Positions 21,654 to 57,777 of a stretch of 64,000 nt of DNA are shown one piece after another. The stretch is from Mytilus trossulus (taxonomy: Eukaryota), in assembly GCF_036588685.1 (NCBI RefSeq), contig NC_086381.1:3596001-3660000 (forward strand). Direction: 5' to 3'. Positions within the stretch are counted from its first letter, which is position 1. The number at the start of each line of letters is the position of its first letter. The position numbers and the translations under genes are program-made. The notes beneath the pieces are model-generated. The model ran no database searches, was not told where the DNA came from, and was given only the letters and a program-made list of their open reading frames with translations.

Positions 21654-24600
21654 ATGAAGACATCGGCTATTGTGACTCTTTTGTTGATTCATATATATCT
21701 AGCAAACGGTGAGTTGAATATTTTTAAAAGCAATCAATTATCAGGTATTCGTTTTTTTTTTTAATAAAATAAATCATTTATTGCACATTTCTCTGCTAAT
21801 TACAACTTACTCGACTCACAGCATTCAGTCGGGTATCCCTGTAAATTAGTTAAACAACCAGAGAGACTATACAATGAAATTAATATATATCAAATTTGAT
21901 TAGTTATACAGTTATAATATAGTAATAATATATAAATACATTGACAATTTTTTTTTTTACAGTTTCCTCATATTACGTAATTACGGAATTTTTACTATCT
22001 ATTGTCTGATATTGTTTATATATTTTATCAGGTATTCGTAACTATTTTCCCACTTTACGTGTAAGGCAATTTCTTATTATATATTTTAATAGTTATGTAG
22101 AAAAAGAGTTAAACAATAAACTGCATTAAGTCTGATAACGTTATTATATTTGAATTTCAAACAAAATAAGATTAAAAAAATATAAAAGATAGGTTTGGGA
22201 AACAAGCTTTTGTTTGGTTGATTTTAGTTGGATTATCTTTCCGCAATCCCCGAGTCTTTTCAGATCAGTACTTTGTGTCGTTTATTTTTTTATTAGTTGT
22301 GTTCATTTGTCAATCACTTCTATTCCGTTTTTTTTATATTATAAACGGGTAACACCGATGCATTTCTTAAATTTTGTTTTGTTTTACTAAATGTTAAAAT
22401 GAAACTGACATCATTCTTACAAGAATCTAAGCCTGGTATAATGAATTTATGTAAACTATGGAACTTTTCAAAGTCAATAACCCTTACCATAGTACAGCGC
22501 CAAATGATATACAAATATTTATACAACTACATACAAAGTATCATTAACTTAATATAGGTTTTCCTCTTAAACTGACTTATCCGCACTTTTTGTTTATCTC
22601 TCGAATAAATTTTCTCATATAATCAAAAACCTAAATATGGTAATATGTAAACGTCAATGAACCATGATGGAGGGGACTGATATATTAAGTCCATAATAAT
22701 GATAAAATTGAGAATAATAATGGTATATGTTTATGCTAGTCCAATAACACACCAACTAGCATTAGCTTATTGTAAGTGTTTCTTAACATTTTTATTTCCC
22801 CGTAAAATGATATAATTACAAACTTTAATATGTTAATAGCTTAAACATCAAACGTTTTAATGCCAAAGGAACATTATTGAGATTGCGTGGTCCAATATTT
22901 TTCTTTGAAATTACATGTGCCAAATATAAATGATTTTATCAACTCAATCACATGGTGGTTCAAAACCAGATAGATAAATCTAAACAAACACATATTTACA
23001 TACAGACACTTTCATTCATACTTTCACACAACTATCATACCGATTGAAATTGATTGATCACAACAACACTTTAATGTTGTATAAATAGTGTAACACAACT
23101 GCACATCTCCGCGACTTCAACGTGGCGAGAAAAACACCAAACACGACAGGTAGAACATTATTATAAGCTTACTAAACTTTATAAGTTAAAGCAGCATACA
23201 ATTCAGTCAGAAACTTATATCTTTATTAATCTTAATCTTTATTTTATTCATAAATTATTCAACTTTTAATGTATAATGATTTGAATGATTTAATACAAGT
23301 TTTAATATTTCTAACCTCAATATTTATTTAATTTCAGGACATTCGTATCGGTATGATAGAAACAAGAAAGTGTTCAGATCGAAAGTGAAGAAACGTCTCC
23401 TAGAAGATTTCTCACGTAAGAACCGTCTCCTGGAAGATTTCAAGAAGTCATCAGGTCCATGTCCACCTGTGGCATGTGAACAGGAATTTATTCCAGACGA
23501 ATGTCGGATGAAAACCTATTTTTATAAAAACGGTTACAAATGTCAAGGATGTGATAATAACAAATGTTCAAAGAGGGTTACAGATTTAAAACGTTTGGTC
23601 AAAAAAATACATTCAATAAAACAGAAAAATATTAGACCGATTCAACAAAAAACAGTCAAAGTTATTGAAGTCCATGCTGAAAAAGAGGAAAGAAGACCAT
23701 CTATCCGAGATAATTTTCCAGACATTTTAGTTCGAACGCCTTTTGATAATGTTCACCATACAGATAACTTTCCAGAATCGTCCGATCGATTGCATCCAGA
23801 CATCCGCAGCAATCTAGGTTCTTTATCTGATTCAGCTGTTCGGCTTCCCCAAGACAACATTCGAAGGCGAGGTTCTTTACCCGATTTGTCCGTTCGACTG
23901 CCCCCAAACAACATTGGAAGTCTAGGTTCCTTTTCTGATTCATCCATTCTAGTTTCCCCAGATATCTTACGAAATGAAGAATCTTTATTTGATAATTCAG
24001 TGCGGCTGCGCCCAGACAACGTTGTGAGTCGTGATCCTTCACCCGATTCATCAGTTCGATTGTTTCAAGATAACGTTGAACCCTTAAGTCCGTTTCCAGG
24101 CTCGTCAGTTCGGTTACCAGCAGACAGTGTCGGACCAAACGATACCCCAGTTGCTCCACCACCACGACCAGTTTCTCCGATTCCTGCTGCACAACCAGAT
24201 TCCCCGCTACCTGCAATTCTCCAAGACTTGCCGCCACCTGCTGCACGACCAGATTCTCCTCTACGTACAATATTACCAGACTTGCCTCCACCTGCTGCAC
24301 TACCAGTTTCACCGCCAGTTCAACCAATAATAACACCCGACGTTGGACAACAAACAAGAGATCCTCTATCTGTTCTCAATGCGCCTCCATCCGACAATGA
24401 ATTCGCCAACAGAGTAAGATTTGACAGCAGCAATGCAAACTTGTTACTACCACCAGTTGATACTGAAAATGTTCAGAATCCATTGATGAATCAAAATACA
24501 ATGCAGAATCCGTTTTTACAAAATATCCCAGCACCATTTCAAGGTCAACAAAATAATAATCCTTGGCCTCAAATTCCGGGGTTTATGCCTCAAAATTTAC

Positions 24601-25328
24601 AAGGTGGAGGTCAATCCCCTGAAATGCAATTAGTTCAAAATCAGCAGATATTGGACCAACTCAGAGGACAACAAGCTGCATTAGAATTTCAAATACAACA
24701 ATTAAGAGGTCAGCAGCAGGTTCCAGCATTTGGACAATTCCCTATGCCTCAGTTTCCTACTGGTGGAATACCACAGACTCAACAAGGTTTTCCTAATAAT
24801 GGAATTCCTCCAAATTTTCAAGGTTTTCCAGCCAATGGAGTAAATACAAATCTACAGGGACAAGGATTCCCGGGTTTTGTACCACAAGGATTCCAAGGTT
24901 TTGGACAAAACACAAACCCGTTTATGACTGGAATGCAACAACCAGTTTCAAACCAAAATTTAGGACCTAACCCAAATGGTCAAGTTTCTCAGTTCCTGAA
25001 CCAGTTGCCTCCTGTTCCAGGCATTAATTCTAACTTTCAAGGTCAAGTACCTTTGAATGGAAACTTTCAAGGGCAAGTGCCTTTAAATGGAAATTTTCCA
25101 GGTCAACCGCCTTTAAATGGAAATTTTCCAGGTCAAGCGCCTTTAAATGGAAACTTTCCAGGACCTGCGTTAACCGCCTCAAACCCATGGGCATCTGTTC
25201 AAGGATTTGCGAATCAAGGCCAAAGTAATGTTCAAACATCAAATACAGGTGGTTTTGTTGATCCCGTAACAAACCAAGCTTTACCGGCAAGCTCTAACAG
25301 TTTTCATGGTCCCATTGCTCAACAGTAA
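21654..25328 (+). CDS. Gene A: secreted 6-Cys-module protein with long Ser/Asp/Pro and Gln/Asn/Gly/Phe/Pro repeat tail, 681 aa; exons 21654-21708 and 23338-25328
   Basis: TATAAAA at 21594; exon 1 MKTSAIVTLLLIHIYLAN-G then GTGAGT donor; tttcag acceptor at 23337 gives phase-1 in-frame splicing into the 652-aa ORF; AATAAA at 25431. Confidence 0.88.
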
Positions 25329-28300
25329 TTATATTTATTGTTTGTTATTTTATTAACTCTGAATTGACTACTTATTTATTTGGCAAGCAGATTACAAGCA
25401 TACATAGAAATCCATACTTTTATTTTATAAAATAAAAATTATTATTTACAGTTGTTAATCTTATTGATTGACCATCAATGCAATCAAACATAATTTGGCC
25501 TGTACCTTTTCATTAGAGCGGTACTGCTGAATTTTATTTATGACAAACCGTACATATGACGCACAAATTTACAAACCTGTAAACCTTTTTTTTTACCTAT
25601 ATGAAATTAACGAATTACCGGCTTTTGACAGGTATTTCTGTATTGTACTGGGAAGTTTCGAGTTATCTATTAATTCTTTGTTTAAATTCAAAAGACAATA
25701 GAAAACACCTGGGAAAATATAACAGTCAAATATACAGAACGCAAACAAATAATAGTTATCAAAAGTACCAGGATTATAATTTTATACGCCAGACGCGCGT
25801 TTCGTCTACATAAGACTCACCAGTGACGCTCAGATCAAAACAGTTAAAAAGCCAAATAAATACGAAGATGAAGAGCATTATGGATCCAAAATTCCAATAA
25901 GTTGTGCCAAATACGGATAAGGTAATCTACTCCTGTGGTAAGAAAATCCTTAGTTTTTCGAAAAGTTTTTATATAAATAAATAACCAATTAAAAACGGAG
26001 ACAAAACAGATTACCACTATTTTGTTAAATGTCGTAGTAGTATCCGACGTCAAATTATTCGTTTGAATTAACCATATTTCATTGAGAAAAAATTCTGACT
26101 AACAATTTGTATGTTAAGGATTATTAAAAATAACTATTGCAAACCTCTGCCAGATTTGGTGTTATAAATGTCTTTTTGATTTGCAGTTTCGCATAAATCT
26201 TTAATAGAGATGGAATATTTTGGTTTTTAAATTTGTCACCAAAATGATGACATTTTATTATCACTATGTGTATATATCAAAACTGATCGTTACAGAATTA
26301 AAAGCAGAGCTAAGTCTCCCTTATACCTTAACAAGGTTCCTGGAAATTTACAGAAAAAATCGGACAGCAGTGTGTTAACTAAAGACTTTAAAACAGTAAA
26401 CAATTACACGTATCTTATCTAACGATAAAATAAACACAATCAGTAGTTAGCTTTGGTTAACTATCTTGTTAATAGTTTACGGGGTTTATATAAACAAAAG
26501 CAACACGATATGTTTCTAGGTATAACTGGTACTACGAACCACCCTATACGAATAGATACCATAGATATAATGACGTATAGTTTATCTCCTCGCTCATTTC
26601 ATGATACAATCAGCAATTTTAACTGCAGACTTTGATCTTGAGCAAACTCAATTAAATGAGGTTTCGTTTTGTAAATTTCACATTCCCGAGTAATAGTAAA
26701 AATAACACCTGCCAATTTTTTGTCATTTTTTACAATTTCTAATATGACGTCACTTGCAATTGGCTTTAAGGTTTCAACTTATTCGGATGTGTCTAATCAG
26801 GTTATGTAATGTATTTTGGTTGTTTCCTGTAATTAGTTAATACTTCAGTTTTATCATATATCTTTTGTATAGTCATTTTATAAAATGTACTGTTTTTAAA
26901 AGTAAAGACTATTCTAAATAATAGGATGTTCTTGTACCTAATAGAAAACCCTGGCCGTTTTTGGCACAACCTTTTTGAACTTTTGGTACTCGATGCTGTT
27001 AAAATTTGTACTTGTTTCGGCTTTCAAACTTTTGAATCTGGGCGTCACTATCAAGTCTTGTGTGGACAACATGCACTTCTGGCGTATTAAAATTTTAAAC
27101 TTGTTGCCTTTTGTTAGCTATTATTCGTGTGTTTCTTTGTCAATTGTGTTCTTCTATTTATTTATATTGTAGTTCTGTAATGTTGTGTTGTCATTTGAAT
27201 GTTATATTTTACATGGCCATAAAAGAGGGAGGTTTGGCATGCCAGGTCCAATCCACCATTTTGACCTTTAAAAATGTCCTTAACCAAATTAGGAAAAGAG
27301 CCATTGTTATATTATATAGTTCGATTCTGTGTGTGATACATTTTAACAATCTGTTTCCGTTGTGTCGTTTGTTTTCTCTTATTTTTGAGTGTGTATTTAC
27401 ATTACTATAAAACGTGTCACGGTACTTATCTATCTAAAAATTCATATATTTGGTTTTGATGTTATATTTGTTTTTCTCATAGGAAAGTGTCTTATGCTTA
27501 GTCCGTTTCTGTGTGTGTTACATTGTTATATTGTGTCGGTGTCCTCCTCTTATATTAAATGCGTTTCCCTCAGTTTAGTTCGTTATCTTGATTTAGTTTT
27601 TTGTCCATGGTTTTATGAGTTCTGAACTACATAGGGCAACGTTTTGCATTTTAAAATGTTTTTCAATACACAAAATCCATCTCTCTAAACATTGTACAAA
27701 CAAATTATATATATACAAAACAAAACAACGCAATGTGGACAAGTAAATATTGTAGCTTTAAAAAATATGATAAAGAAAATGTGTTAATTAAAAATGAACC
27801 TTTACAAAGAGCATTCGCCAGCTGGAAACCATGGCTCGATTTTCCTAATGTACTATGGAATTAATTACTATGAGTGTGTGTATATGTAGTTTGTTGGTAA
27901 TAAAAACATTGCCAAAAAAAAAAATAATGAATGAGAGACAACATGTTGAATTAAGTAATAGATGCCTTTTTAAAAAAAATAATATTTGGTTGTTAAAGTG
28001 TTGACTGGAGGCAGTGAAGCACATTTGCATGAGGCGCTTCCGCGCTTCAGTCTATACAAGTGTACACTGTCAACACTTTCATATGCCAATAAAATTAAGT
28101 AGCATTAATTTTCTTATGATGACCAGACCACGGAAAAAGTTTTGTTACGCTTTTCTGTTATTCTGGTGAGGATTATTTTTGTAGAAGTACGTGTCATCAC
28201 GAATATAACATTTTATTTTCATATGCAGGATTTTGAAAAGACGCGCTATTAATTTATCCAATCAAACTAACATATAATAAATGTACTAATAGGTAATCAT

Positions 28301-29673: not shown

Positions 29674-29923
29674 CATAATTCTTGTTTCACGTTAAACAGT
29701 AGATTGATTTGAAATCTTGAGAAACACCATCAGTCGGAATTGAAAATTGTTTGACATTACCTGTCACTCCGCTTTTGTATTGAAAGTCTGTTTATGTTTA
29801 AATACCCGTCAAGAACATGCTATATCTATTTAATTACACAGATCAAATCAATAATAGCCTTAAACTCTTGAACCTGTATTTGAAAGATACAAATCTACTG
29901 TTTAACGTGAAACAAGAATTATG
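29674..29923. repeat. 250-bp segment bounded by perfect 32-bp inverted repeats
   Basis: cataattcttgtttcacgttaaacagtagatt (29674-29705) and its reverse complement (29892-29923); no TSD visible. Confidence 0.8.
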
Positions 29924-31514: not shown

Positions 31515-31680
31515 ACACCGTATTCGCTCAATGGGTCCATAAAAAGTAATAAAGATGACATATGGGCAATTAAGGTGTCATTATCAGTCAAATGTCGTGA
31601 CGTCACATCTTATTTTCATCTAATATAATCCAATCAACGTAGTATAAGTTTTAATACGGACATTCAATAAGGTATAAAAG
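31515..31680 (+). promoter_or_regulatory. Gene B proximal promoter (CCATAAA, TGACA/TGTCA, CRE, CCAAT, TATA)
   Basis: ccataaa 31537, TGACGTCA 31598, CCAAT 31630, TATAAAA 31673; same order upstream of genes C and D. Confidence 0.75.
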
Positions 31681-31723
31681 AAGAAAAATTTAGCAGATTG
31701 GGCATAATTTTCAAACAGTGAAC

Positions 31724-33495
31724 ATGCAGTCTCTTCTTTGTATTGTGCTTGTTTTGGTTTCTCTCTATTTAGTGCAAGGTATGATTTTCATTTTAGTTAA
31801 TATAAATCCAGGCTTTAAAGTTCATTCAGATAATTTGTAGAAAAAAACATAATAGAATTTGAAAAGATAAATATGTATTTTTGTAAAAATTTTAATATAC
31901 TGGGACCACTATGAATAGTAATTCCAGATATATGTGTCGAGTAACTAAAAAATAAACAATGGAACAAAAGAACAATTGGACAATTTGCCTTGACTAGACA
32001 AAACTATAACATTAAAATAATAAAATGTATGCACTGATTATGCATTATACGTTTTTAACTGGAATATTAAATTGAAATGTTTTGTTCCATGAGCGCCCGG
32101 CAATTGTATTTAAATTGTATTCGATTAAAAAAAACGTGGGTACAACCATAGATATTTTTCTGCACCCAATTTAATTAAAAGTGTGATCTATTAAATGATT
32201 TAATCAATGAATGTGCAAACTCAATTTTATGAATTCAAAATTGATAAATATTTTTCATTTACTATTATTTCTGATATTTGTGTTGAAATTAATGAATCAA
32301 TAAATATGAATACGTTCGAAAAACGAATAATAATTATAATAAAACAATAAAGTCAATGTATGTATGTCTTATAAAGTACGATCAATAACAAGATGTTTTA
32401 TTGCGAGGAAAAGAAAAGACAAAACACAAATGGTTTATTGTGTTTAAACAGCATGCCAATTGTTTCAAAATATAACACTATATAAAATACTTTGAAATCT
32501 TAAAGACATGTATGCCAAAAAAGACAATTATGTTACATTTATTGAGTTTTTCAAAAATATTCATCTTTTTAACGACTTTGTTGGTTATTGCTCTTCTCTT
32601 CGATACGGTGAGACTATCGTTAACGAAGTTTCAAATGTACATTCTTACGTAAAAAGCTTCCCGACGTCGTCGTTGTTCCTAACTTGATGATTAAATCTTT
32701 CTTTTAAAATTACAGAAATTAAAGATACATGTAAGACGTGTATTATTTCATGCAAATGTTAATATTTTTTGATTTACATTCTTTTCTAAATTTATCTTTT
32801 CAGGTCGAACATATGGCTATCAAAAAAAGATAAAAAAGGCTCACGTGGTTAAGGTAAAGGATCCCATTGGATTCCCGACAGATCAAGTACATATACCTAA
32901 AGAACCTGTTCTGTTACCAAGTAAGAGACTACCTGACTGTGATGTAGGATGTACTCTACAGATAATACCACCAGAGTGTATACAAGAAACATTTGGATTT
33001 GAACATGGCGTCAGGTGTAGAGGCTGTGATGTTGATATATGCAACAGAGGAAGGGGAGATAATTTAGATAGATTGCAGGGCGGTTCCCAGTGGCAAAACG
33101 GAGGCAGAACCCAAAATTTAAATAGCAGAATAGGCGGAGGATTCGTTGATAGTTTAGGTGGAGGCAGAAACCAAAATCTAAACAGCCGAATAGGCGGAGG
33201 TTTCCTTGATAGTTTAGGTGGAGGTAGAAACCAGAATTCAAACAGCAGAATAGGCGGACAATTCGTTGATAGTTTAGGTGGAGGAAGAAACCAAAATTTA
33301 AACAGCAGAATAGGCGGAGAATTCGTTGATAGCTTAGGTAGTGATTTCTTTAACGAAGTACAAAACTCGAATTTAGGTGGTAGATTTAGAAACAGACAGA
33401 ATACTAATTTTGAAAGTAGAAACAGATTGGATATAAACTCAAATGACAGAAGAAACCGCTTTGAAACAAACAGACAAGTTGGGAGTGGGTGGTGA
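31724..33495 (+). CDS. Gene B: secreted 6-Cys-module protein with Gly/Asn/Arg-rich 20-aa repeats, 248 aa; exons 31724-31778 and 32804-33495
   Basis: Exon 1 MQSLLCIVLVLVSLYLVQ-G with GTATGA donor; ttttcag acceptor; in-frame exon 2 GRTYGYQKK...; AATAAA at 33597; paralog of C and D. Confidence 0.9.
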
Positions 33496-34846
33496 TGATC
33501 ACGTGGTTACGATTTGAGTATTTTGTAACAAACATTTAGAAATCCAGAGTATTTTGTTGTACAATTTGTAATGAAATGACATATTTGTAAATAATCAATA
33601 AACGGGTAACGATCTATTTCTTACTTATTGGTTTTTGTTATGAAAATAATCAGATTGGTAATATTGCCAAGACATTTTTTTCACTATAGACTGAATGACG
33701 TTAATATAGCAATTATAGGTCATTATACAACATTCAACAATGAGCAATAACAAGTTTCAAAGTACGAAGATAGTCTAGATGTTTAAAGTCTTTAATTTGA
33801 GTACATGAGTACATTCATTTTGTTATGACAATTAGATTAAGTTTAAGCTCAATAGACTTTAACCTAACGTCACACATATACATCCAAATACAGTTTTCTT
33901 AAAAGATTTGTAAGTAGTGTTTGGTAGGCAAACTTGACATAAGATTCATTTGTAGGATTTCAAAATGTCCTTTATGAAATAGTGTAAGCTGGACATTTTC
34001 TTTTTTTATCATGGTTAATACTGTTCATGGATAATATTTTCTTTAATGTAAAAATAATATGTTGTTTAATTGATAATGAGACAACTCTCCCCAAGAGACC
34101 AAAAGACACAAAAATTAACAACTTTAGGTCACCCTTCAAAAACAAGAAAAACCTAAACCGTAAAATTAGCTATAAAATGACAAATGTAAAACAATTCAAA
34201 AGATAAAACTAACGGTCTAATGAATGTCCAAAAAATTTACGTTTTTTTTTTAAATAACACATGAACATAGGACAACCACTGAATTTATACAGAATGTGGC
34301 GGGATAAAACATGTTAGAGCCTAACCCTCCCGTAACCTGAGACAGTGGTGTAACTTTAAAAACCAGTTGAAAAAGGCTAAACACATCAGATGAATACAAA
34401 TAGAAATTCTACACAAAGTGGACGTGGTCGGGTACTTGTATATTCCAACAACAAATAGATATGAAGTACAGATCTGAGAGTACTCGCAGTTACTTACAGC
34501 TATTGCAAAGCCACTAACAACTAATAAAAAATTAATGCATCTAAGACTAAAGATGTCCTGCATACAATTTACACCATGAAACGATGTTTGCAATGTTTGG
34601 TTGCAAACACCTGTTTAGTTATCACACAATTATGTACACAATTTTTACCAATGCATTTTGTCATTGAACAGTAAATGTGTTAACTTTTCGCAATTAACTC
34701 AAACGCAAGCATGATTAATCTTTTGAGGAGTTTGGAAAACTTCCTTTGGAGTATATTATTTAGTTACAAATCCTTTGACATATTGTTTTGTTGACAGATG
34801 AATAATCAATAAAACAGACAAACTATGAAATCTGTACGGGCATAGA

Positions 34847-37800
34847 CACGGTGGGTATGGTTGTCCTGCGAGAGAACGTACTGTGCTGGTGATTCGGTCC
34901 TGACGGGTGCTGGTGATCAATGAAAAAATGTAAACAAAGACGAAAATGATGATTTTTGACGTTTTCACTAATAAAAAATGGAAGAAAACAGTTGAGATTT
35001 TTTAATTTTGTTTCTTATGGGTTCATATATAAACCATTGAAAAGTTTACCCTCTAAACTGTTCCAGTAAGCGTAACACTAAAATGCTCATTTTCAGAAAA
35101 TCTCGAACTGAAAAAATAAAACAAAAATGCTCATAGAGTCCGCTTTCTATATCGCAATCCACACGACAAAACTATTTTGTAAAAAAACATTGCAATTTAT
35201 AAAAATTTAGCATTTTCTGAATTTACTCATGTCCTGATACTGTGCTGGTGGGTCCTGTCATTGTGTTGGTGGGTCCTGATACGGTGCTGGTGATTTTGGA
35301 TTAGAAGTTGGTCATATTTGAAACAAGTGTTACAAAATCAATAAAATTTGGCAGCTAATTGTTGTCAATAGGATCTATTACTCCTATTTAGCTCTTGTGC
35401 ATCCATTTGGCTGTTTAATATGTGTTTTCAAATGATCGTAACTTGTATAACATAATTACATAAAAGGGCAACATCTTTCGTCCAATATCAGAGAACAATA
35501 TATAGTATCTAAAATAAGAATAGTTTTATTAAGATATTAAATGCCCCTTACATTGATGCCTCAACAATGATCAAAGCCCATGCCGCATAGACATGTTTGT
35601 CAGCGCTCCGCATACCCCTCCCCACTTCCACCCAACCAACCCTCCTCATTTCTTCCTTCATTGTTACAGTGGTGTACCAACACAACAATTTATCACATTA
35701 AATAATTACACAAAGACACACATTATTGAACAACGAATGCTCGCAGGTACTGAAAGCTAGTTCAATGCCGCATTTTCAACTAATAGATAAACCATGTTCT
35801 CATATACAAAAATCTCAATCGTGTCGATTAAAAGTCTCAAAACTTAAGTTCACATTTTAATGTTTGATGAAGCAGAACTTTAAAAGTGTGCAGTGAATCT
35901 TGGGCTCACAACAGTTATTGTCATAATTATGTTTACATGAGACTTATAAAGGAATTAAGAAGGTACCAAGAAATGTTTTACAGTTCAATTTAATTATCAT
36001 GAATGGAAGGTGAATGGAAACTGTGAGGGTCAAAATCTTAAATTGCTTATAAATGTTGCTGGACCCAGTTTCGTTATCTGATCTGAATGTTCTGAAATGT
36101 GCAAGGTGGAAAGACATTTTGATTTTTTTTACTCGGAAAGTTTTGCCCTAATTGCTTGAACTTTTGCAATATTAAAGCCGATTTCAATGAGTGTGAAGAC
36201 AAAGGGAATAGCTTTGGTTATATTGCTTGATGAACAGAAAAGTCATAGTTAGGTTATGTAAACTACCCTACTTTAAGAGTATACTAGTCCGACAAATGAC
36301 ACATCTTTCTGTCTGTAGGACCAGGCTACTTCGAAAGGAGCAAGCTAACCAAAGATATTATGTTTGCCTATATACTCGATGGAATCGGCTGTAACTAAAA
36401 CCTCGAATACATTTTAACAGACAGTGGTCATGTTTGTTGATGAATATTGTTTTTCCTAGATTCACTCTTGAAAAATCATTTGGTAACATTTGGTCAGGGA
36501 CGTATATAATTTAAGTCCTTAAATTTGATCAAGTAATTTCAAAAAAGATCTTATTTGTAATTGCGGACGCCAAGACAATATATGAACCTCACACGACCCC
36601 TCGACACAGGTGAGCTTATATATGATCTTATAGCGATTCAGGTTGATAACCATTTGAAATTAAGCCAGTTTGTGTGTGTGTGTAGATTTGTATTGTTTTA
36701 AACTGTTATGACCTTTTAAAGTTAAATGTAGGTGTTTAATCTAAGAATTTCTTTTTTAAACTCAATTGGTAGTATGAAGCTATTGATTGATTGATTGTTG
36801 GTTGCTTAACGTCCAGTGGCAAATATTTCATGCATATTCAGGAGGAGAACAAGTTCACAATAAATACAATAGGTAGGTCTTGTCATAAAAGAGGCCAATA
36901 GTCGTGGAATTTTGGACTGCCACTGGAAAATGAGAATGTATTGGATAGGAACAGAAATTTTGCCTTGCAGCAGGCCAACTACGGACCCCTCAAAGAGTTG
37001 CTGCAAGGGTTATTAACGTGCAAAGACGTCCCCATTCTGACCGGACGCGACTGCGAACTTGATACATCCCGCACAGCCAAACGGACGCCCCTCTTCAACA
37101 AGCGTTTTACTGCCGGTCAGGAGAAGACCAAGTGACCATATTTCTATTTCCCAGTAACCCTTGGGGAATTTTGAAATGCACAATTAACAAAGCAAACGTT
37201 AGTTTCAAATACTTTTAAATAGATTTTAAACATAAAAATGTGATTTAAGCTGCTAAAGACATATGATTCAAACGCTCAGAAAGTTCTTTGTTCTATATTT
37301 TTTCTCACCATTTTTATGCAAAACGGTAACCTTTTACATTTTTATTTAATGGGTTATTGTTGAAGGTATTACGATGACGTATGGTAATTAACACATACTT
37401 CCTTTGTTTTCTTAAGGAAACTTGTCCATTGACAACAAACATACCACATCATCTACTTTATATATATTTTGGTGATCTTGCAAAATGATCGTAATCCCGA
37501 AAATCGTAAACATATTTTCCTATCTTAAAAGGGGACAAGAAGGGTTCCATTAACAGGCCAATAAATAAGATTACAGTTAATTTAAAAAAAAAAATAAAAA
37601 AAAATTGGGGGGTATTTTTTCTTGCATAATAACAGTAAACGGATTCAAAACAATGTCAATTTCAAGAAAGCAGGCAACAGTTAATTAGTTAATAACAGTA
37701 CAGGATCAATATCTTGAATATATGCCACTTTTAACTAAAATATAAAGGCACAGAACCAGGACATCGGAGCACAGAACCAGGACCGTTTTTCTAATCACCA

Positions 37801-38046
37801 GCACCGCGTCAGGACAATTCCGTTAAAAGAACTTGCACGACTTTTGCAATATAATATTGTTGTAATATACTTTGCATGGTACTTGTGACGCATCAGAGAA
37901 AAATTAAGCAACAAAACAGTCGTTTTATTGCCGTTCTGATACAATGTAAACAAACCCACCAGCACAGAATCAGGACCCACCAGCACCTGTCAGGACCGAA
38001 TCACCAGCACAGTACGTTCTCTCGCAGGACAACCATACCCACCGTG
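34847..38046. mobile_element. Non-autonomous Transib-like DNA transposon, 3.2 kb
   Basis: 69-bp TIRs with one mismatch starting CACGGTGG; 5-bp TSD ATAGA on both sides; subterminal GTCCTGA-n-GTGCTGGTG repeats; no transposase ORF seen. Confidence 0.85.
36783..37166 (-). mobile_element. SINE-like element with (ATCA)n tail nested in the Transib-like element
   Basis: GC-richer body ending in ttgattgattgattg on the plus strand; its tail motif gtccagtggcaaatatttcat recurs at 55690-55930. Confidence 0.6.
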
Positions 38047-39084
38047 ATAGAAAACCTAAAATTGACACATATGTTAAAAATAAGATGAAATTATCATCAA
38101 AACAAATTAAGTTCTGTATGTTCTTACCTCTTTTTATATGAATTATCTTTGCATGCTACATATTTTACCTGTAATATTCAACCCGACAGGGTATTTTCTA
38201 GTTTTCGACAAAAAATCAAAAAGCTTTTAGCACTTTATGTGAAAATTTGGTGAAGTGTTGAAATAAGCTCCCTTTTGATGTTCCTAACTTTATGGGAGTT
38301 ATACGATGTTATTCGCAAAAAAGGTATTAGTTTCCATTTTTCTTACTCTTAGATCTGTACTTCGTTACTTTTTGCTGTTGGGATATACAAGTACCCGACC
38401 ACGTCCACTTTGTGTAGAATTTCTATTTGTATTCATCTGATGTGTTTAGCCTTTTTCAACTGGTTTTTGTTCGTTCTTATATGTTGTAATGTTACACCAC
38501 TGTCTCAGGTTACGGGAGGGTAAGGCTCTAAAACAAATCAAACGTGCTTTCAGCAGTTCCATCAAACTTTGATGACTGATTTACATCATTTCAGTGTTTA
38601 GATAGATTATAGATATGTCTGATATGATATTGAAGGGAACTAGTGTTTTACTCTTTGAAAGGGAGAAAAGCATATCATACACTTGTGACGCTTATCTTTA
38701 TTGTTTTGGGAAATCTTTATTCTTCACGTTATCAAGAGAGATGGACGAGGGAGACATACATTGGTTCATGTGTTCTTTCATTTATTGGTTATCCATACTT
38801 TTGAAATATACCACTCACATTTTGTTAAGTCCCCATCCCCGTTTTGGGAATCCTGGATCCGCATTAGTTTCATTTTTGTTGTGTTGATTGTATTAGGCCA
38901 TACATGTATACACTTTATACTTAATATAATGTCATAGAATACTTTACATAGAACCCTGTAGGCTTACATTGCCTATGTAAACTTTTAGAACTATAGTATG
39001 CACATTGAACGACAAAGTTATGTGACGTATAAAAATTTCTGACGTCAGACACTCAAAGTATTCGTAGATAGTAGATGTGTTTGT

Positions 39085-40735: not shown

Positions 40736-41184
40736 AACTTTGTACTTTCTGTTCAGAAATGAAAGAAAATATTTTTCACATTTTTGGGAATGTAATGTAT
40801 CACAAAACGTCTGGCTATCCGTCATAGATTGGATTAAAAATTATGGCATTCTTCTGCCTTTCAGTGCAAAAGAAGTCATTTTAGGTGTGTCTGAAGATTT
40901 TGTCAACAGTAAAACAGTTAACAATATTCTGTTGTTATTCAAATATTATATATGCAAATGTAGATGTAAGAACATATAGAAATGTCATTTGTTAGAAGCA
41001 GCTTCAATTTAATTTATTTGATTAATTAACAAAATCTTTTTGTAATATTTATATCTATATCTTATTGTATCCATATGACTTAATTGATTTATCAAGTATT
41101 ACTTTATTTTTAAAATGTGTATCGAATACTGTAGTATGTAATTTCACATGTTTCAACATCAAAAATAAAATAATTACAAAAAAA
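40736..41184 (+). mobile_element. 5'-truncated LINE (L1/Tx1-like ORF2 C-terminus plus A-rich tail) with 8-bp TSD
   Basis: HFWECNVSQNVW...EVILG...NNILLLFKYYI.KC resembles the zinc-binding C-terminus after RT; aataaa and poly(A) at 41161-41186; AAGAGTAT at 40728 and 41185. Confidence 0.75.
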
Positions 41185-42654: not shown

Positions 42655-42810
42655 CAATGTCCATAAAATAGTAATAAAGATGTCACAAAGACTATATAAG
42701 TGTCATTATCATTCAAATTTGGTGACGTCGCACCTTATAATTTCCATCTAAAATAATCCAATCAACATAGAATAAATTTGAATAAGGACATTTTATAAGG
42801 TATAAAAGAA
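42655..42810 (+). promoter_or_regulatory. Gene C proximal promoter
   Basis: ccataaa 42661, TGACGTCG 42723, CCAAT 42758, TATAAAA 42801; colinear with the gene B promoter. Confidence 0.75.
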
Positions 42811-42851
42811 AGAAAATGTAGCAGACTGCACATCAATTTAAAACAGTGAAC

Positions 42852-44495
42852 ATGCAGTCTCTCCTTTGTTTCGTGCTTATTTTGGTTTCTCTCTATTTAA
42901 TTCAAGGTATGATTTTCTTCATTATGAAAATAAATAAAGGTTGTAATGTTCAAACATATAATGTGAAAAAAATTAATATAATATATTTGGAAATACTAGA
43001 ATTTGATTATAAAATGCAAATTTGTTTTATTGTGATTTGTTATATATACTAGGACTTCTATAGTAGTCTCAACTATATCTGATGAATACATAAATTAAAA
43101 ATAAGACGAACTATACAGTTCAATAATAAGTACTACTTATGCTTTATACGTGTCAATCTGCAATATCAAAATAAAATGTTTCGTTCAATGAGCACGTCAC
43201 AATTGTACTTTAATTGTATAAGATAAAAAAGAATTGTGCTACAACCATTGATGTTTTTCGTCGCCCAGTTCATTTGAAAGTATGATCTATTAGATTTTAT
43301 TGTTGAATGTACAAACTTAATTTTAATGAAATAAATATTAATATAATTAAATAAATTTCTTTTACTTTCTCTCTGATGTTTGTTTTGAAATAAGTAAATG
43401 AAACGAATCATTAGATAATGAACTTATATAATTAGAAAAACGAATAATTATAATGAAGAAAATAAGTCAATATCTTCTCGATAACAAGATGTAGAATAGC
43501 AAGGATGGGACAAAAACAAAACACAAATATCATTAATTGTTTTTAAACAACATTCCAATTGTTTCATAATATAACACCAAATAAAATGCTTTGAAAATAT
43601 TAAAGAAATGTATGCTGAAAACGACAATTATGTTACACAATTTGAGTTTTCTCGATACGGTGAGACTATCGTCGACGAATTTTCATATTTACATGTTTAT
43701 GTAAGAAAGCTTCGCGACGTCGACAATGTTCCTAACTTGATCATTTAATCTATCAGTCCTTTTAAAATTAAAGAAATTAGAGATAAGACGTGTTATACTA
43801 CATATCATGCAGATGTAAATTTATTTTGACTTACATTCTTTTCTCTATTTATGGTTTCAGGTCGTACATATGGCTATCAAAAAAAGATAAAAAGGGCTCA
43901 CATGATTAAGGTAAAGGATCCCATCGGATTCCCGACTGATCAATTACATATAACTAGAGAACCAGTTGTGTTACCAAGTAAGAGACTACCTGACTGTGAT
44001 GTGGGATGTACTCTCCAGATTATATCACCAGAGTGTATACAAGAAACATTTGGATTTGAACATGGCGTCAGGTGTAGAGGCTGTGATGTTGATATTTGCA
44101 ATAGAGGAAGGGGAGATAATTTAGAAAGGTTGCACGGTAATTCCCAGTGGCAAAACGGAGGCAGAAACCAAAATTTAAACATCAGAATAGGCAAAGGATT
44201 CGTTGATAGTTTAAGTGGAAGTAGAAACCAAAATTTAAACAGCAGAATAGGCGGAGGATTCGTTGATAGTTTAGTTGGAGGTAGAAACCAAAATGTAAAC
44301 AGCAGAATAGGCGGAGAATTCGTTGATGGTTTAGGTAGTGATTTCTTTAACGAAGGACAAAACTCGAATTTAGGTGGTAGATTTAGAAACAGACAGGATA
44401 CAAATTTTGAAAGAAGAAACAGATTGGATATAAACTCAAATGACAGAAGAAACCGGTTTGAAACAAACAGACAAGTTGGGAGTGGGTGGTTATGA
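42852..44495 (+). CDS. Gene C: close paralog of gene B, 229 aa; exons 42852-42906 and 43861-44495
   Basis: Exon 1 MQSLLCFVLILVSLYLIQ-G; tttcag acceptor at 43860; near-identical Cys module; three rather than four 20-aa repeats; AATAAA at 44594. Confidence 0.9.
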
Positions 44496-47400
44496 TCACG
44501 TGGTTACGATTTGAGTATTTTGTAACAAACATTTAGAAATCCAGAGTATTTTGTTGTACAATTTGTGATGAAATGACATATTTTTATATAATCAATAAAC
44601 GGGTAAAGATCTATTTCTTATTTAGTGGTTACTTTTATAAATACAATCAGATTGGTAAGATTGCCAAGAAAGAATTTTTCACTATAGACTGAATAAGTCT
44701 TTTGTAAACGAAACGCGCGTCTGGCGTATATACTAAGTCCTGGTATATATGATGAGTTTATTGGTAAGATTACCAAGAAATGATTTTTCACTATAGACTG
44801 AATGACGTAAATATAGCAATTACAGGTCATCATACAGCCTTCAACAATGAGCAAAACCCCTACGCATAACTAGTTTCAAAGTACCAAGATTGCCTTGATG
44901 TTTAAAATCTTCAATTTGAGTACATGGGTACATTTATTTTGTTATGACAATTAGATGTTTAAAAGCAATAGACATTAATCCAACGACACACATATATACA
45001 TCCACATGCTTTCTTTAAAGATTATTTATGTAGTGATTTGTAGGCAAATAAAGGCAACAGTACTGTAGTATACCGCTAGTCGAAACTCTTAAATCGATAG
45101 AAAATAACAATTCCGGGTTAAAAACTAAAACTGAGGGGAAAACAATATTAAAGCGTAACACACAAAAAAACGAACTTAGCATTAGGCAAAATCAGATGAA
45201 AATAACAAATATAACATCAAAGCTAAATACATGAAAAGCAAATACTCAAACTTGGCATAAGGTTCATTTGTAGGACTTCTAAATGTTCCCCATGAAATAG
45301 TGTTCACCGAACATTTTTTCATGATTAATACTGTTGACGGACAATATTTACTTTGATGTAATAAAAAACACGATGTGATATAATTGCCAATGAGACAACT
45401 CTCCACAAGAAACAAAAAGACACAGACATTAACAACTATAGGTCACTGTATGACCTTCAAGAATGAGCAAAGCCCATTACGCATAATTAGCTATGAAATG
45501 ACAAATGAAAAAAAATTCAAATAAGAAATCTAACGTCCTTTTTTGTCCAAAAACTTTACGAAAAAAATATCTAATACATCAACAAACGACGACTTACTTG
45601 ATCATGACTTGGGACAGGCAAATACATACAGAATATGGCGGAGTTAACCATTTTAGCGGGACCCCCCCTAAACATGTGACAGTTGTGTAACATAACAAAT
45701 CAAGAATTGACCATACAAATCAATTGAAAAATGCTTTATTCGTCAGATGGATACAAACAGAAGTACTACACGCAGAGTGGACGTTGCCGGGTACATGTAT
45801 ATTTCAACAGCAAAAAGACACTAAGTACAGATCTGAGAGTACTCACAATTACCGACAGCTAGTTCAAAGCCCGGGCGGCGGCATTAACAACTAAATAAAT
45901 GAAAAATCATGCATCTAAGACTAAATGTGTACTGCACACAATTTTACATACGAAACAATATGTTTAGCTGTAAAATCACTGGATACATTGTTTACCAGTG
46001 AATTTCACGAGGGTATCACCAGCCCAGTAGTCAACACTTCGAATTCGGTGTTGACATGAATATCAATAATGTGGTCATTTTTATAAAATTCCTGTATTCA
46101 AAACTTTGAACTTTTTGAAAAAAAATAAGGATTTCCTTATCCCATGCATAGATTACCTAAGCCGTATTTGTCACAACTTTTTAGAATTTGGATCCTCAAT
46201 GCTCTTCAATTTGTACTTGTTTGGATTTATGAATATTTTTGATTTGAGCGTCACTGATGAGTCTTATGTAGACGAAACGCGCGTCTGGCGTACTAAATTA
46301 TAATCCTGGTACCTTTGATAACTATTATCATTAAATAGTGAATATGTTCAGGGTTCGTTATTATATTATAGTTCGTTTCTGAACTGAACTTATGTATCCC
46401 GTCATACTTTGAACCACACAATTTTTTTATTCATTATTATTACTTCTACTGTTAAGTCTGTTTTTTGTTATATCTACTTTACGTGACTCTGCATTTATGT
46501 ATGACGTCAATCGAACGACAAAATTATTTTAATGTCTACCTGTGCGAATTTCAAACGCGCAATTTTACACCAGTACTGAAAACTTCTATCCTTAACGGGT
46601 AGACTTTACATAGATAAATCAAGTCGTATAAGAATAGCAATATGAGTATGTTAAATCTGATGTATGCCTTTTTGTGCTTCTTAGTTACATTTGTTGTTTT
46701 TATAGTGATATTAAGATGATAACACAATAGTGACTGCTGCACCCCTATTTTTGACATTTTTACTCTTTGAGTATGTTTGTCTTGTTCATGCATCGTTGAC
46801 AATGTAATGGAATTTGATGCGACTGTCATACAAGTGAGAGGTTCAGCTAGCTATAATACCAGGTTCAATCCACCATTTTCTACATTAGAAAATGCCTGTA
46901 CCAAGTCAGGAATATGACAGTTGTTATCCATTAGTTTGATGTGTTTGGACTCTTGATTTTGCCTTTTGATTTTTGATTTTCCTATTTGAATTTTCCTCGG
47001 AGTTCAGTATTTTTGTGTTTTTACTTTTTTCTGCGTGTGTTACATTTTAATGTTGTGTTTCTGTTGTGTCGTAGTCCTTCTCTTATATTTGATGCGTTTC
47101 CCTCAGTTTTAGTATGTAACCCGGATTTGTTTTCTTCTCAATCGATTGATGAATTTCGAACAGTTTAAGTGACGTGTATCATTGACTCATTCTCCTTACT
47201 TTTCTTTTTATACGCTTATTACCGGTATTATGATATACCCTTGTTCGTCCGTTCCTCGTAAATATGTTGGACGATCTCTAAAAACCGTTTTAACCAATAT
47301 GCACGTAATATTTGTAAGTTTCCAAGTTATGGGACTTTATTCATTCTACAAGGGATACTTTTCAGTTTTCAGACGATTCTTTAAAAATGCTTTGAGTACT

Positions 47401-50400
47401 TTTTCTGAAAGTTTGATGAAGCGTTGGTGTCTATTCACATAAGCTACCCTTTGAAGCTAAATTTATGGGAGTTATGGGATGTTATTTGTAAAAAGGGTGG
47501 GATTGTTCGGTGTTCTGACAATATCTCAAAAGCGCATTGAGCAGTTTATGACTGGTTTATATCTATTAAATTAAACTCTTTTCTGTTTTTTTTTGTATAT
47601 ATATTATATATATTTCTGATATGACATTAAGAAGTTATGGTTTGTTATTCTTTGAAAGAGCAACAGGCGTATCGTGCGCTCTTGACGCTAATCTTTATTC
47701 TTCTGGCCACAAGTTCGTTTAGTTTTCTTCAATAGAAGCGGATTAGGGAGGAGTGGCATCCTATGGAAAGTGGTCTCATTGGCAATCATACCACATTTTC
47801 TTTTTATATTTTATCTATACCACTCAAATTTTGTTTAACTTCCGCTCCCCTATTTCGGAATCTTAGATCTGCATTAATTCAATATATTTTGGAGGATATT
47901 TTATAAGAACAAACTTGTATACACTTTATATAATGCTATAACATATTTAAAAACTTGACAATGCATTATTTCTTGAAATATGTTGATAATTCTATACGAT
48001 GTGAATATTTAGAATCAAATTCCTTCAAAGGCAGATCGACAGTTGTATTAATGAATATATAAATAAACGAATGGTTTATCGGAAGGTGCATTATATTTGA
48101 ATTATATTATAATTGAAGTGATTTACCACTAAAACTAATTTCTCGACACTTGACAAAACGTAACAACTTCAACAACCAATACACATAAGCTAGGGTAACA
48201 TTATAAATCTACATTATGATATCAAAGCAATATACGACAATAATATCTTAAAGTCGTCTGGAACGTGACATTCCATCGTGTTGCTAAAATTAATGCCTTT
48301 CTTTTTTCTTCTCGTTCACAGAATTTTCGCATTAAGGCAGCTGGGATGTCTAAGTGTTCGACAGTAGAATTTTCTTCAACATCTGTAAACTACTTTTGGC
48401 CGGTCAATGTTCTTTTAAATTGTCTTATAAAATTTAGGTGTCACAAACCTTGTTTTAATTCAAAATACATTGAAATTAAAGAAATCACAGGTATTACTAT
48501 TGCCCATATGGCAGAAAATTAATATATTTTCTTTATATTGAGAATATTTATGAGAACTGCTTTTTATAAATACTTAGAAAATACAAAACAAATAATTCGG
48601 GAACACGGGCATTATTTTATTGAAAAAAATCGAAACAACAAGTTGCCCTTTCAAAATCTAAACAATTATCTGCCAAAATTTCATCCAGATACTTTGTGAT
48701 CATTTTGAATACACTTAATATATATACTATATATTTTGCATTACAAGTTTTACTCGTAGATGCTTTTGTTGTTTATTGAACGCATTTGATACTCACAATA
48801 TTTAAAAAAAAAAAAAAAAAAAAGTAGTTTTGCAAAATGACAATAGTTGCCCAAAGAAAGACACCCGATCTTCCTTAACTATTTTTATTTTTATTTTATA
48901 ATATCTAGCATTACAATTCGATGACAACTTATAGCAGGTTGTTTCTTTTTATCAGATACAAAACATATGTATGATGACAGTAAACATACAAACAATAAAG
49001 CTTTAATTAAAGAAAACAAAGAAGAATTACAACTAGATTCTTATAGCAGAAGAAGAAGTAAAAAAAAATCAATAAAAAAAATCAACCCAAACTAACAAGA
49101 GAGAAAAATAAAAACACAATACAAAAAGACAAAACTGCTTACATGAATTATTAAATCTTTATAATAAGGTGATATTATATTGTCGTTTTATCATTTGAGA
49201 ATATCTTGAATTCTTTCAGACATTGATTAGGATATGGAACAAGTATTAAACTTAAACGCTGTTGTTTTCGGTTGAACATGCTAACGGAAACACATTTGAT
49301 TGCTGAAGTGATTTCGATGTCTGGATAATTATAACATGAGTTTGCCATATACATAAACCGTAGCTGATGTAGCTAAATTTAAAGAACGTATTAATACAAA
49401 GACAGACTGCTCCGTGTTTATAGCTGTGCAAAAAAAAATAAGAATAAAGAAAGAAAAAATGTTTATACTAGGTATATTCCACAAAGAAAACCCCACATGA
49501 AAAGTTGTGTACACACAAAAACTGAAGATGTGTTTACAATTCACGCAGAGCCAATCGTACAGAGATGAGTACCAAATGGATATTTCCAAACACACTATTT
49601 TACCAAAATGATAACTATAACTTTTAGCTTTCTCAGGTTTGTAAAAAAACTTGATAGTTTTATTAAGGTTGCAACGTTTATATTTCCATATATAAATCAC
49701 AGAGCCAAAAAAATGTATATATCAGCACGTTGACAACATCAATTGCCACATAGGATGACCAATCACACTAAGATTTGAAACTTTAAGTTTCGTTTAGAGG
49801 CAAGATCAAAATATTCGAATTCGACAAATCAATGCTAAATAACGTTAAACTTTTTAATTGAACTCCTTGCCCTTACCAAATCAGGAATATGACATTTATT
49901 TCAATTCGTGTGATGTGTTTGAGCCTGTAAAATCCAAACTTGATTTTGCTATGAGATGATCACCGATAATCCATAAGTATTAATGTTGAACAGGCGGTCT
50001 AGGGACATGCCATTTTGGTTGTTTTGGACCATTCAGGAATCAATATCTTATCAATCCCTCTAAAACTAGACTGTTTCTTTGCTTAAAAATGTTAAATCTA
50101 ATCACATGGACTGACTGCATAATAATTACTTAAAACATCAAACATATTTATTTTAAAAGTGGCTGGGACAGGAAATCACGTTTTTTTTTATTATTAAAAA
50201 ACGCACAGATAATTGCATTAGATTAAGAAGGAGACTAAGAACATCGGATGTATTAATGACGGAAAATCTTACAAAAAATAACTGAAGGTAAAAATTGAAT
50301 AATTTGTATTGATTTAAACTGCAGTACCATAGTTTGAGGTGTTTCACTAGGCCTTCGTGTGTGTGGATGTGTGTGTAAAAACGAAGAGGGACAAGGGGTA

Positions 50401-50687
50401 TAACGTTATAAACAGTTCATTATTTAGATGATAAGATCTAGAGCCATTAACAACGCCCAAGCGACAGCTTATCATGCTATTTTCCAATTTAACGATTTTG
50501 ATGAACAAAATTTCGTATTGAGTTTTTCTTTGAGTTTGATATTTTTGTATCAAATGTACAATAAATCATAATAGAAGACGATTACACTTTATAACGGTGA
50601 ATTTGGTATCTTGTATCTGTGATGGAGCGTATGTTCTGTTTTTCTAACGTCACTGTATCTTATACGTCACTCTTTACATATTACTGA

Positions 50688-50866
50688 TACCGTATTCGTT
50701 CATCGTTGTCCGTAATCCATAAAAAATGTCATAAAAGTGTTACAATGACAATATAGGTGTCATTGTCTGTCAAATTCAATGACGTAGACTCTAGATTTAG
50801 CCATTACAATACAATCACTGCGTATACGTTACGATTAAGAACATTTATTTTGCATGGTATAAAAGA
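50688..50866 (+). promoter_or_regulatory. Gene D proximal promoter
   Basis: ccgtattcg shared with B; ccataaa 50717, gtcataaa 50728, ggtgtcatt, TGACGT 50780, TATAAAA 50858. Confidence 0.7.
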
Positions 50867-50911
50867 TACATGGTTTTGTAAATTGGGTATCAGTTACAAT
50901 TTACAGTTAAC

Positions 50912-52079
50912 ATGAAGTCACTTATTTGTTGCACGTTTCTATTTGTCTCTTTATGCTCAGTTCAAGGTATGATTTTCAACGTCTGTAATGTTAATATTTT
51001 ATTTTGTGAATATGTAAATTTAAGTCACGTGAAGTGTAGTGTAAAAAAATAGAAAGTTATTTTGAAAAAAATCAAAAATAATCTTTACTTTGGTCTTTTT
51101 GATATTAATGTAGAAATAGGATTGAAAAAATGAAAAGAAAAACATTGATAACCTCAAAAAATATAATAATATTTTCCTAATAGACAACATGAATTTCTAT
51201 GTGTTTTTCTAGTCGTGTACACTATAGTTTTTTTTATTAGAGATTTGGTAAATTGTGTCAAACTTATAAACGGACGCACTGTTGATGCTGCATTTTGGTT
51301 TCTTCTTTATCACGTTTTACATTCCATGTCACAGATGAAATATAAATTGTAACTCCAATACTGTAAGCTAAATTTAATCAAATAAAATAACAAAATATTT
51401 TTTTTATTTTATAGGTCGCAGCTATGGTTATCACAAAAATACCAAACATACTACCGTGGTTAAACCCAAGGATCATGGGTTTCTGAAAGATCCGATCCAT
51501 ATACCAAACGACCATGGGTTTGTAAAAGAACCAGTTCATATACCAAACGACCATGGGTTTGTAAAAGATCCAGTTCATATACCAAACGACCATGCCGTGT
51601 TACCTAGCAACAAACTGCTTCAATGCAATAAACCGTGTACTCTACAGATAATACCGCCACAGTGCGTACAAGAAACAATCGAATTTGAACATGGCGTCAG
51701 GTGTAGAGGCTGTGACATAGACATTTGCAGCGGCAGGGGAGATAGTCTAGATAGATGGCAGGGCGGTTCCCAATGGCAAGATGGCAGCTTTCAAAATAGA
51801 AACCAGAGAATAGGCGGAGGATTCGTTGATAGTTTGGGTAATGATTTTCTAAACGTACTAGGACAAAATTCTAATTTAGATGGAAGAATTGGAAATAGAT
51901 TCGATACAAATCTTGATAGAAGAAACAGATTTGATACAAATAATGACAGAAATAACAGGTTTGATACAAATATTGGCAGGAGAACAAATATTGACAGAAA
52001 TAACAGATTCGACCAAATTTTCAATGAAAGAAGAAGCCGATTAGATACAAACAGACAAGTTGGCAATGGTTGGTTGTGA
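50912..52079 (+). CDS. Gene D: secreted 6-Cys-module protein with His-rich 13-aa repeats and Asn/Arg/Asp tail, 239 aa; exons 50912-50966 and 51415-52079
   Basis: Exon 1 MKSLICCTFLFVSLCSVQ-G with GTATGA donor; ttttatag acceptor; exon 2 GRSYGYHK...; AATAAA at 52190. Confidence 0.9.
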
Positions 52080-57757: not shown

Positions 57758-57777
57758 GTAAAAAGTTTTGTAGAGAT

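Follow-up and report, generated by a model that had tools for sequence, protein, structure and literature searches.

A six-cysteine module found across bivalves is joined to low-complexity tails in a tandem gene family of the mussel Mytilus trossulus

Introduction

Molluscs have many proteins in which a lineage-restricted cysteine module is fused to low-complexity repeats, so that a further family of this type is no surprise in kind, and many components of bivalve materials (shell matrix, periostracum, ligament, byssus and mucus) are still anonymous "uncharacterized" proteins. Among the mussel foot proteins are cuticle proteins enriched in Cys (mfp-16 to mfp-19) and a plaque protein rich in His, the recently described mefp-12 (PMC7018715, PMC13022425), which is reported to contain Zn-finger-like globular domains in which His and Cys are conserved (PMC13022425). 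Here, we describe four genes, A to D, that lie in tandem in a stretch of 64,000 nucleotides (nt) of the Mytilus trossulus genome (hereafter the window), which spans positions 3596001-3660000 of an 82.3-Mb chromosome (NC_086381.1, called C9 below). Each gene encodes a six-cysteine module and a long low-complexity tail. The module is a domain without a Pfam model. New here are the domain itself, its spread through the bivalves, the three architectures in which it occurs and a second, inverted copy of the gene cluster; we hold the descriptive part of this account with high confidence. The explanation as a whole, in which secreted proteins with a disulfide knot and a disordered tail form an extracellular material or coating, stands in our judgement at about even chances.

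A conserved six-cysteine module

The first two cysteines of the module are separated by 4, 3, 3 and 3 residues in A, B, C and D, respectively, and the remaining spacings are 8, 12, 2 and 4 residues, exactly at the positions and with the spacings given by an earlier sequence-only reading of the window. Translated in six frames, the window contained four matches to the strict pattern, compared with 0.0 in 200 shuffles. In an alignment of 19 diverse module copies, the six cysteines are the only invariant positions and their spacing is nearly fixed. The signature I[PS]xxC...GxxCxGCDxxxC that had been noticed in the four genes holds, and the wider consensus of the 19 copies, CPxxxC-x4-IPxxC-x3-T[FY]-x4-G-x2-C[RK]GCDxDIC, carries both IPxxC and C[RK]GCDxDIC. 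By a local hidden Markov model and regular-expression scan, all four window genes show the family spacing C-x3-5-C-x7-10-C-x12-13-C-x2-C-x4-C, in which the last interval is x6 in proteins with many modules.

Structure prediction and evolutionary rates agree with the alignment in setting one conserved cysteine module against low-complexity regions, as had been claimed. AlphaFold2 modelled the module alone, with the 19-sequence alignment, at a mean predicted local distance difference test (pLDDT) score of 81 and with a central beta-hairpin. For mature B in full length, the prediction was confident over residues 40-81 alone, and residues 1-39 and 82-229 scored below 50. These models indicate that the module (about 42 residues) is the single folded element, preceded by a disordered basic stretch at the N-terminus and followed by a long disordered tail. 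The ratio of nonsynonymous to synonymous substitution (omega, Nei-Gojobori), for which the short segments give rough values, was 0.00-0.26 in the module, 0.15-0.79 in the segment preceding it and 0.25-0.94 in the tails of the cluster copies, reaching 1.22 in the tails of a gene pair on another chromosome (E1-E2, on C10). The reading frames were intact in all ten close copies. Thus, purifying selection acts far more strongly on the module than on the tails, and the module would be a folded core kept by selection in proteins that are otherwise disordered and quick to change.

The module had been said to fit no named domain, and searches of Pfam, of the PDB by sequence, and with Foldseek and VIA-align bear this out. 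An hmmscan of Pfam-A with the four window proteins (E <= 10) and ten relatives (E <= 1) returned no WAP, Kunitz, Kazal, antistasin or EGF match. The zinc ribbon PADR1 was matched by gene A only, with 8.9 bits and E = 1.8 against a cut-off of 25.1 bits, and Lustrin_cystein gave a sub-threshold match to a different region of the oyster protein P0050. A PDB sequence search with the module profile yielded a chance match (E = 0.56). When the module model was compared with the PDB, the best Foldseek match had E = 3.5 and VIA-align wide returned none with Z >= 2, which for a model of 47 residues is not evidence of a new fold. Searches of the ESM Atlas gave no usable match, and word-indexed protein searches matched only Mytilus or unnamed proteins.

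Distribution and architectures in bivalves

A profile of the four window sequences was searched against 1.84 billion representative proteins and gave 30 matches at E <= 1e-3, one of which (P0057) seems to have been picked up by chance through the basic N-terminal stretch. Every match with a named organism is bivalve, from Mytilus, Crassostrea/Magallana, Pecten, Potamilus, Sinanodonta, Mactra, Mercenaria or Mya, and the remaining matches are unnamed metagenome or Logan sequences. Proteins of Potamilus, Mactra, Mya, Mercenaria, Crassostrea, Pecten and Sinanodonta were matched at E = 1e-18 to 1e-4. The query was built from four Mytilus sequences, and absence beyond bivalves is therefore not proven by it.

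Three architectures were observed. The module occurs in stand-alone peptides of 63-72 amino acids (aa), which are encoded in tandem in Sinanodonta. It is also joined to low-complexity tails, for instance in C. virginica P0055, whose Asn/Arg/Gly/Asp/Trp repeats closely resemble those of B-D. Finally, P0036, P0041, P0043 and P0046 contain 10-12 tandem modules each, ending in C-x2-C-x6-C. Judged by these matches, the module is bivalve-wide and the A-D subfamily is limited to the genus Mytilus. The description of the family as lineage-specific thus applies to the subfamily, but not to the module, which was matched in oysters, a scallop, unionids and clams. For annotators, a compact six-cysteine domain that is missing from Pfam and found across all major bivalve lineages sampled offers a new model.

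Gene models and transcription signals

Genes A-D are two-exon genes on the plus strand of a window that is AT-rich (about 31-33% GC). Their features are as follows.

21594-21600 (+): TATAAAA box of gene A, 60 nt before the ATG; an invariant block in the upstream alignment of all four genes
21654-21708 (+): exon 1 of gene A, 55 nt, encoding MKTSAIVTLLLIHIYLAN, with the initial G of a Gly codon as its last base; donor GTGAGT; product identical to the P0031 N-terminus
23338-25328 (+): exon 2 of gene A, 662 aa plus stop; polypyrimidine-AG acceptor; RefSeq P0031
23460-23567 (+): six-cysteine module of gene A, C-x4-C-x8-C-x12-C-x2-C-x4-C
25431-25436 (+): AATAAA of gene A, 103 nt past the stop codon
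31673-31679 (+): TATAAAA box of gene B, 51 nt before the ATG
31724-31778 (+): exon 1 of gene B, 55 nt, encoding MQSLLCIVLVLVSLYLVQ plus G; donor GTATGA
32804-33495 (+): exon 2 of gene B, 229 aa plus stop; XP_063400380; RefSeq P0001
32938-33042 (+): six-cysteine module of gene B, C-x3-C-x8-C-x12-C-x2-C-x4-C; the sole region predicted to fold
33052-33060 (+): Arg-Gly-Asp (RGD) of gene B, beginning 4 residues past Cys6
33100-33339 (+): 60-nt tandem repeat of gene B, 4.0 copies; 20-aa unit GGGRNQNLNSRIGGxFVDSL
33597-33602 (+): AATAAA of gene B
42801-42807 (+): TATAAAA box of gene C, 51 nt before the ATG
42852-42906 (+): exon 1 of gene C, 55 nt, encoding MQSLLCFVLILVSLYLIQ plus G; donor GTATGA
43861-44495 (+): exon 2 of gene C, 210 aa plus stop; XP_063400381; RefSeq P0005
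43995-44099 (+): six-cysteine module of gene C, first spacing x3
44109-44117 (+): RGD of gene C
44157-44336 (+): 60-nt repeat of gene C, 3.0 copies
44594-44599 (+): AATAAA of gene C
50858-50864 (+): TATAAAA box of gene D, 54 nt before the ATG
50912-50966 (+): exon 1 of gene D, 55 nt, encoding MKSLICCTFLFVSLCSVQ plus G; donor GTATGA
51415-52079 (+): exon 2 of gene D, 220 aa plus stop; LOC134684986 isoform X1; RefSeq P0028
51474-51594 (+): 39-nt His-rich repeat of gene D, 3.1 copies
51624-51728 (+): six-cysteine module of gene D, first spacing x3
51735-51743 (+): RGD of gene D
51892-51984 (+): 30-nt DRxNRFDTN repeat of gene D, 3.1 copies
52190-52195 (+): AATAAA of gene D

The introns measure 1629 (A), 1025 (B), 954 (C) and 448 nt (D), end in a polypyrimidine-AG acceptor in every gene and split the Gly codon in phase 1; they are placed by sequence signals and by identical RefSeq models. 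Indeed, P0031 (A), P0001 (B), P0005 (C) and P0028 (D) equal exon 1 plus Gly plus exon 2 letter for letter, and the exon 2 product of gene B is 100% identical to XP_063400380, "uncharacterized protein LOC134684984" of M. trossulus. The gene models of the sequence-only reading are therefore those of the existing NCBI annotation, in which the spliced products are already present as "uncharacterized" proteins and gene A is misnamed. The coordinates, the GTGAGT and GTATGA donors and the RefSeq identity together confirm a 55-nt exon 1 with an 18-aa hydrophobic leader and a phase-1 Gly in all four genes. The spliced models were searched exon by exon, and the full-length proteins used are database entries; the Logan-derived proteins are bacterial-style open reading frame (ORF) calls that start within exon 2 and are uninformative on splicing. 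The invariant TATAAAA lies 51-60 nt 5' of the ATG and AATAAA about 100 nt 3' of the stop codon in all four genes, which on these signals appear to be complete, compact and independently promoted transcription units.

Secretion of the products, also part of the earlier claim, is supported by the signal-peptide-only exons and by A/G (gene A) and V/G (B-D) at positions -3/-1 relative to the predicted cleavage, which by inspection are consistent with the signal-peptidase rule. The expected mature N-terminus [RH][ST]Y[GR]Y was found as HSYRY (A), RTYGY (B), RTYGY (C) and RSYGY (D), followed in each case by basic residues.

The RefSeq name of gene A, R3H domain-containing protein 2-like, can be rejected: neither an R3H domain nor any other Pfam domain was detected in the 662-aa exon 2 product, and the name probably stems from a low-complexity Gln/Pro match. 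For gene D, RefSeq lists the isoforms X2 (-13 aa) and X3 (-16 aa), which correspond to the in-frame loss of one repeat unit (51474-51594 and 51959-52006, respectively). X3 could arise by excision of a 48-nt GT...AG segment; X2 lacks a GT-AG explanation and equals the two-unit state of D', the gene D copy in the second cluster. These "isoforms" may be repeat-number alleles or paralogue transcripts rather than splice products. Upstream of B and C, about 150-160 nt before the start codons, lies the palindrome TGACGTCA, which resembles a cyclic AMP response element (B, 31560-31570; C, 42690-42700, with one change) and is degenerate in D. Upstream blocks such as GTGTCATTATC are common to B, C and D.

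The family in the M. trossulus genome

When a profile of the four N-terminal regions was searched against the whole genome, 22 loci were matched. The complete A-D cluster is repeated in inverted orientation at C9:2.812-2.846 Mb (loci L023-L026), about 0.75 Mb away. A BLAST comparison with positions 18832-56000 of the window revealed collinearity in exons and introns as well as between the genes, with most blocks at 90-97% identity, a few at 83-89% and several indels. Two explanations suit the second cluster: an inverted segmental duplication of recent date, or a haplotype that the assembly did not collapse. Both copies have RefSeq annotation (LOC134683490, LOC134684651). Two more paralogues, E1 and E2, map to 69.94-69.95 Mb of C10. 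Module matches that are weaker but still clear cluster at C9:22.42, 23.41, 30.33-30.36, 44.30 and 67.98-68.01 Mb. Thus, what had been described as a four-gene family comprises eight copies in two clusters, two copies on a different chromosome and at least 12 more distant module loci. Tandem gene duplication is the way in which the family grows. The distant loci encode the following.

L011: an A-like protein with Asn/Gln/Trp repeats
L017: an Asn/Met/Gly-rich protein with a C-terminal module
L014: two modules in one ORF
L013 and L015: His-rich modules and tails
L012, L016 and L018-L022: short module-only exons

A signal-peptide-only exon 1 of 55 nt with a split Gly codon is present in the second cluster as in A-D, and L011, L016, L018 and L020-L022 have a signal-peptide-only exon 1 of 52-61 nt that ends in a split G codon; exon 1 was not resolved for L012-L015, L017 and L019. 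The tandem module-only genes L018, L020, L021 and L022 (C9:67.98-68.01 Mb) carry a seventh cysteine in place of the Ile of IPxxC, and such an odd number of cysteines could allow intermolecular disulfides.

Two features of the surrounding DNA may be added. Positions 34847-38046 of the window hold an element that is precisely missing from the second copy, where the flanks, which end at 34846 and resume at 38047, overlap by 5 bases (18605-18609), as expected of a young insertion that duplicated a 5-bp target site. Downstream of the genes, satellites occupy 54228-55089 (38 copies of a 23-nt unit) and 57774-60015 (50 copies of a 44-nt unit), the latter explaining a GC-rich, AT-skewed stretch at 58-60 kb.

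Tails and repeats

The repeat blocks described before are real tandem arrays. At the DNA level, Tandem Repeats Finder confirmed all of them: 54-nt, 27/54-nt and 30-nt arrays in gene A, and the 60-nt (B and C), 39-nt and 30-nt (D) arrays listed above. B, C and D are collinear over their entire length. The 20-aa unit is present in four copies in B, three in C and one in D, a 13-aa His-containing unit is expanded in D and single in B and C, and the 10-aa DRxNRFDTN unit is expanded in D and has one or two copies in B and C. The B-D tails thus differ by unequal tandem expansion of homologous units. An exchange of repeat blocks among B-D is ruled out by the full-length collinearity and the differential unit expansion. 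Hence, the blocks are not "swappable", as had been proposed, among B-D, and what stands of this idea is that A has an unrelated tail. What gene A shares with B-D is limited to the N-terminal motif, the module and, near the C-terminus, a short GGFVD.

The composition of the tails differs accordingly. The B-D tail is rich in Asn, Arg, Gly and Asp, with an isoelectric point (pI) of about 11.5, and the B-D proteins are basic (pI 8.8-9.7). The gene A tail is first rich in Ser/Asp/Pro, then in Pro and then in Gln/Asn/Gly/Phe; exon 2 runs from the basic N-terminus and the module through 18-aa Ser/Asp/Pro/Leu repeats and Pro-rich repeats to a Q/N/G/F/P-rich region with NGNFxGQxPL repeats. Within it, positions 24620-24720 (exon 2 residues ~429-460) encode the Gln/Leu-rich, heptad-like stretch QLVQNQQILDQLRGQQAALEFQIQQLRGQQQ, which is near-identical in four Mytilus species and faintly matches the trimerisation coiled-coil TolA_bind_tri (E = 5.6). 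This stretch may be an oligomerisation helix inside an otherwise disordered tail.

A possible role in an extracellular material

How could such proteins act? The signal peptide would be cut at the conserved Gly, and the six cysteines would pair into three disulfides to give a stable knot, which could serve as a conserved binding or cross-linking handle. The tails might then drive self-association, condensing or gelling into an extracellular material or coating. An exposed RGD just outside the knot could, in B, C and D, tether this material to integrins of the cells that secrete it or lie next to it. The reading as a material or coating is drawn from the architecture, the composition, the relatives with many modules and the likeness to low-complexity matrix proteins of molluscs. 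We regard this functional part, with the knot as handle, self-associating tails and an RGD for cell attachment in B-D, as tentative and a little short of even odds; an extracellular-matrix role is plausible, but unproven.

The RGD begins 3-4 residues past Cys6, a position immediately beyond the predicted fold, in B, C and D, in their second-cluster copies and in E1/E2, and it stands at the same place in the orthologues of M. edulis, M. galloprovincialis and M. coruscus. In the L011-type subfamily, an RGD is found 18 residues past Cys6.

Several observations weigh against the extracellular material. The RGD is absent from gene A and from all non-mytilid members, it is replaced by RVD in the D-type proteins of M. 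coruscus, and the motif easily arises in sequence rich in Arg, Gly and Asp. Disulfide formation is assumed from secretion and cysteine invariance, and the CPxxxC...CxxC layout could in principle bind zinc. In Sinanodonta and in this genome, the stand-alone cationic module peptides have the look of soluble bioactive peptides more than of building blocks. Literature searches by accession, gene name, conserved peptide and topic returned no paper on any family member. Furthermore, with Tyr at about 1%, the proteins are unlike the known DOPA (3,4-dihydroxyphenylalanine)-based mussel adhesives, which argues against DOPA-type adhesion. Adult oysters, clams and unionids make no byssus, and the presence of the module in these animals argues against a purely byssal role of the domain.

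The best-surviving alternative, although an unlikely one in our estimate, is that the proteins are soluble defence or regulatory factors, with an inhibitor-like or antimicrobial disulfide module, cationic tails as accessories and tandem expansion as diversification in host defence. The signal-peptide-bearing Sinanodonta peptides (P0052, P0054, P0058), the short module-only exons at C9:67.98-68.01 Mb and the basic character of B-D would suit such factors, and the use of the module alone, fused and in poly-domain proteins mirrors what is generally known of protease-inhibitor domains. However, the whole module is strongly conserved (omega ~0.0-0.26) and lacks the hypervariable loop often seen in fast-evolving inhibitors and antimicrobial peptides. 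Neither an inhibitor nor an antimicrobial-peptide family was matched in Pfam, nor was a sequence or fold in the PDB, and the long low-complexity tail makes up most of each protein.

We consider it improbable that, instead of forming a disulfide knot, the module binds zinc outside the cell in the manner of a zinc ribbon and mediates metal-dependent assembly. Knuckle-like pairs, CPxxxC and CxxC, do flank the beta-hairpin, the PADR1 zinc ribbon left its faint signal in Pfam, and the Zn-finger-like domains reported for mefp-12, compared here by description only, would offer a parallel among plaque proteins (PMC13022425). That signal, though, is far under the cut-off, the invariant cysteines number six and not four, the proteins traverse the oxidising secretory pathway, and no conserved His stands beside the cysteines in A-D. 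Very little speaks for B-D as prohormone or neuropeptide precursors releasing the 20-aa units at Arg sites: a signal peptide and three to four near-identical units bounded by Gly-Arg or Ser-Arg are present, but the units have no flanking dibasic sites and vary freely in number and sequence across paralogues and species, oyster and scallop relatives keep the tail composition and not the tail peptides, gene A does not fit, and conservation resides in the module instead of the repeats.

A broader and more speculative reading, which we think possible but rather doubtful, is that a hitherto undescribed extracellular domain restricted to bivalves serves as a modular toolkit, deployed as stand-alone peptides, as fusions to condensate-forming tails and as scaffolds of 10-12 domains, with the RGD-bearing B, C, D and E of Mytilus coupling a secreted biomaterial to cells. 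For experimenters, the module is a small and easily expressed target that comes with natural tail variants for testing how repeats tune self-assembly.

Comparison with known systems

The module resembles WAP, Kunitz, Kazal, antistasin, EGF and the Lustrin Cys-rich repeat in its length of about 40 residues, its six cysteines, the preceding phase-1 intron and its single, fused and poly-domain use, but the spacing of its cysteines differs from all of them. Like the mussel foot proteins, A-D appear to be secreted Mytilus proteins of low-complexity, condensate-prone sequence; some foot proteins contain small domains with Cys or His, and gene D has His-rich repeats. In contrast to the high Tyr and Lys of DOPA-type foot proteins, A-D contain 0.8-1.0% Tyr and 3.2-4.1% Lys; Cys accounts for about 2.6% of B-D, and the module is found beyond byssus-bearing adults. 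The comparison with mfp-12 and mfp-16 to mfp-19 was made by description. No sequence relationship was found to the molluscan low-complexity matrix proteins, from which A-D also differ in carrying the six-cysteine module of a separate bivalve-wide family and in tails that are rich in Asn/Arg/Gly/Asp or Gln/Asn/Pro. In design, the two are alike: A-D, too, combine a signal peptide with a repetitive low-complexity domain, and both have long, fast-evolving repeat regions, form tandem families and are restricted to particular lineages.

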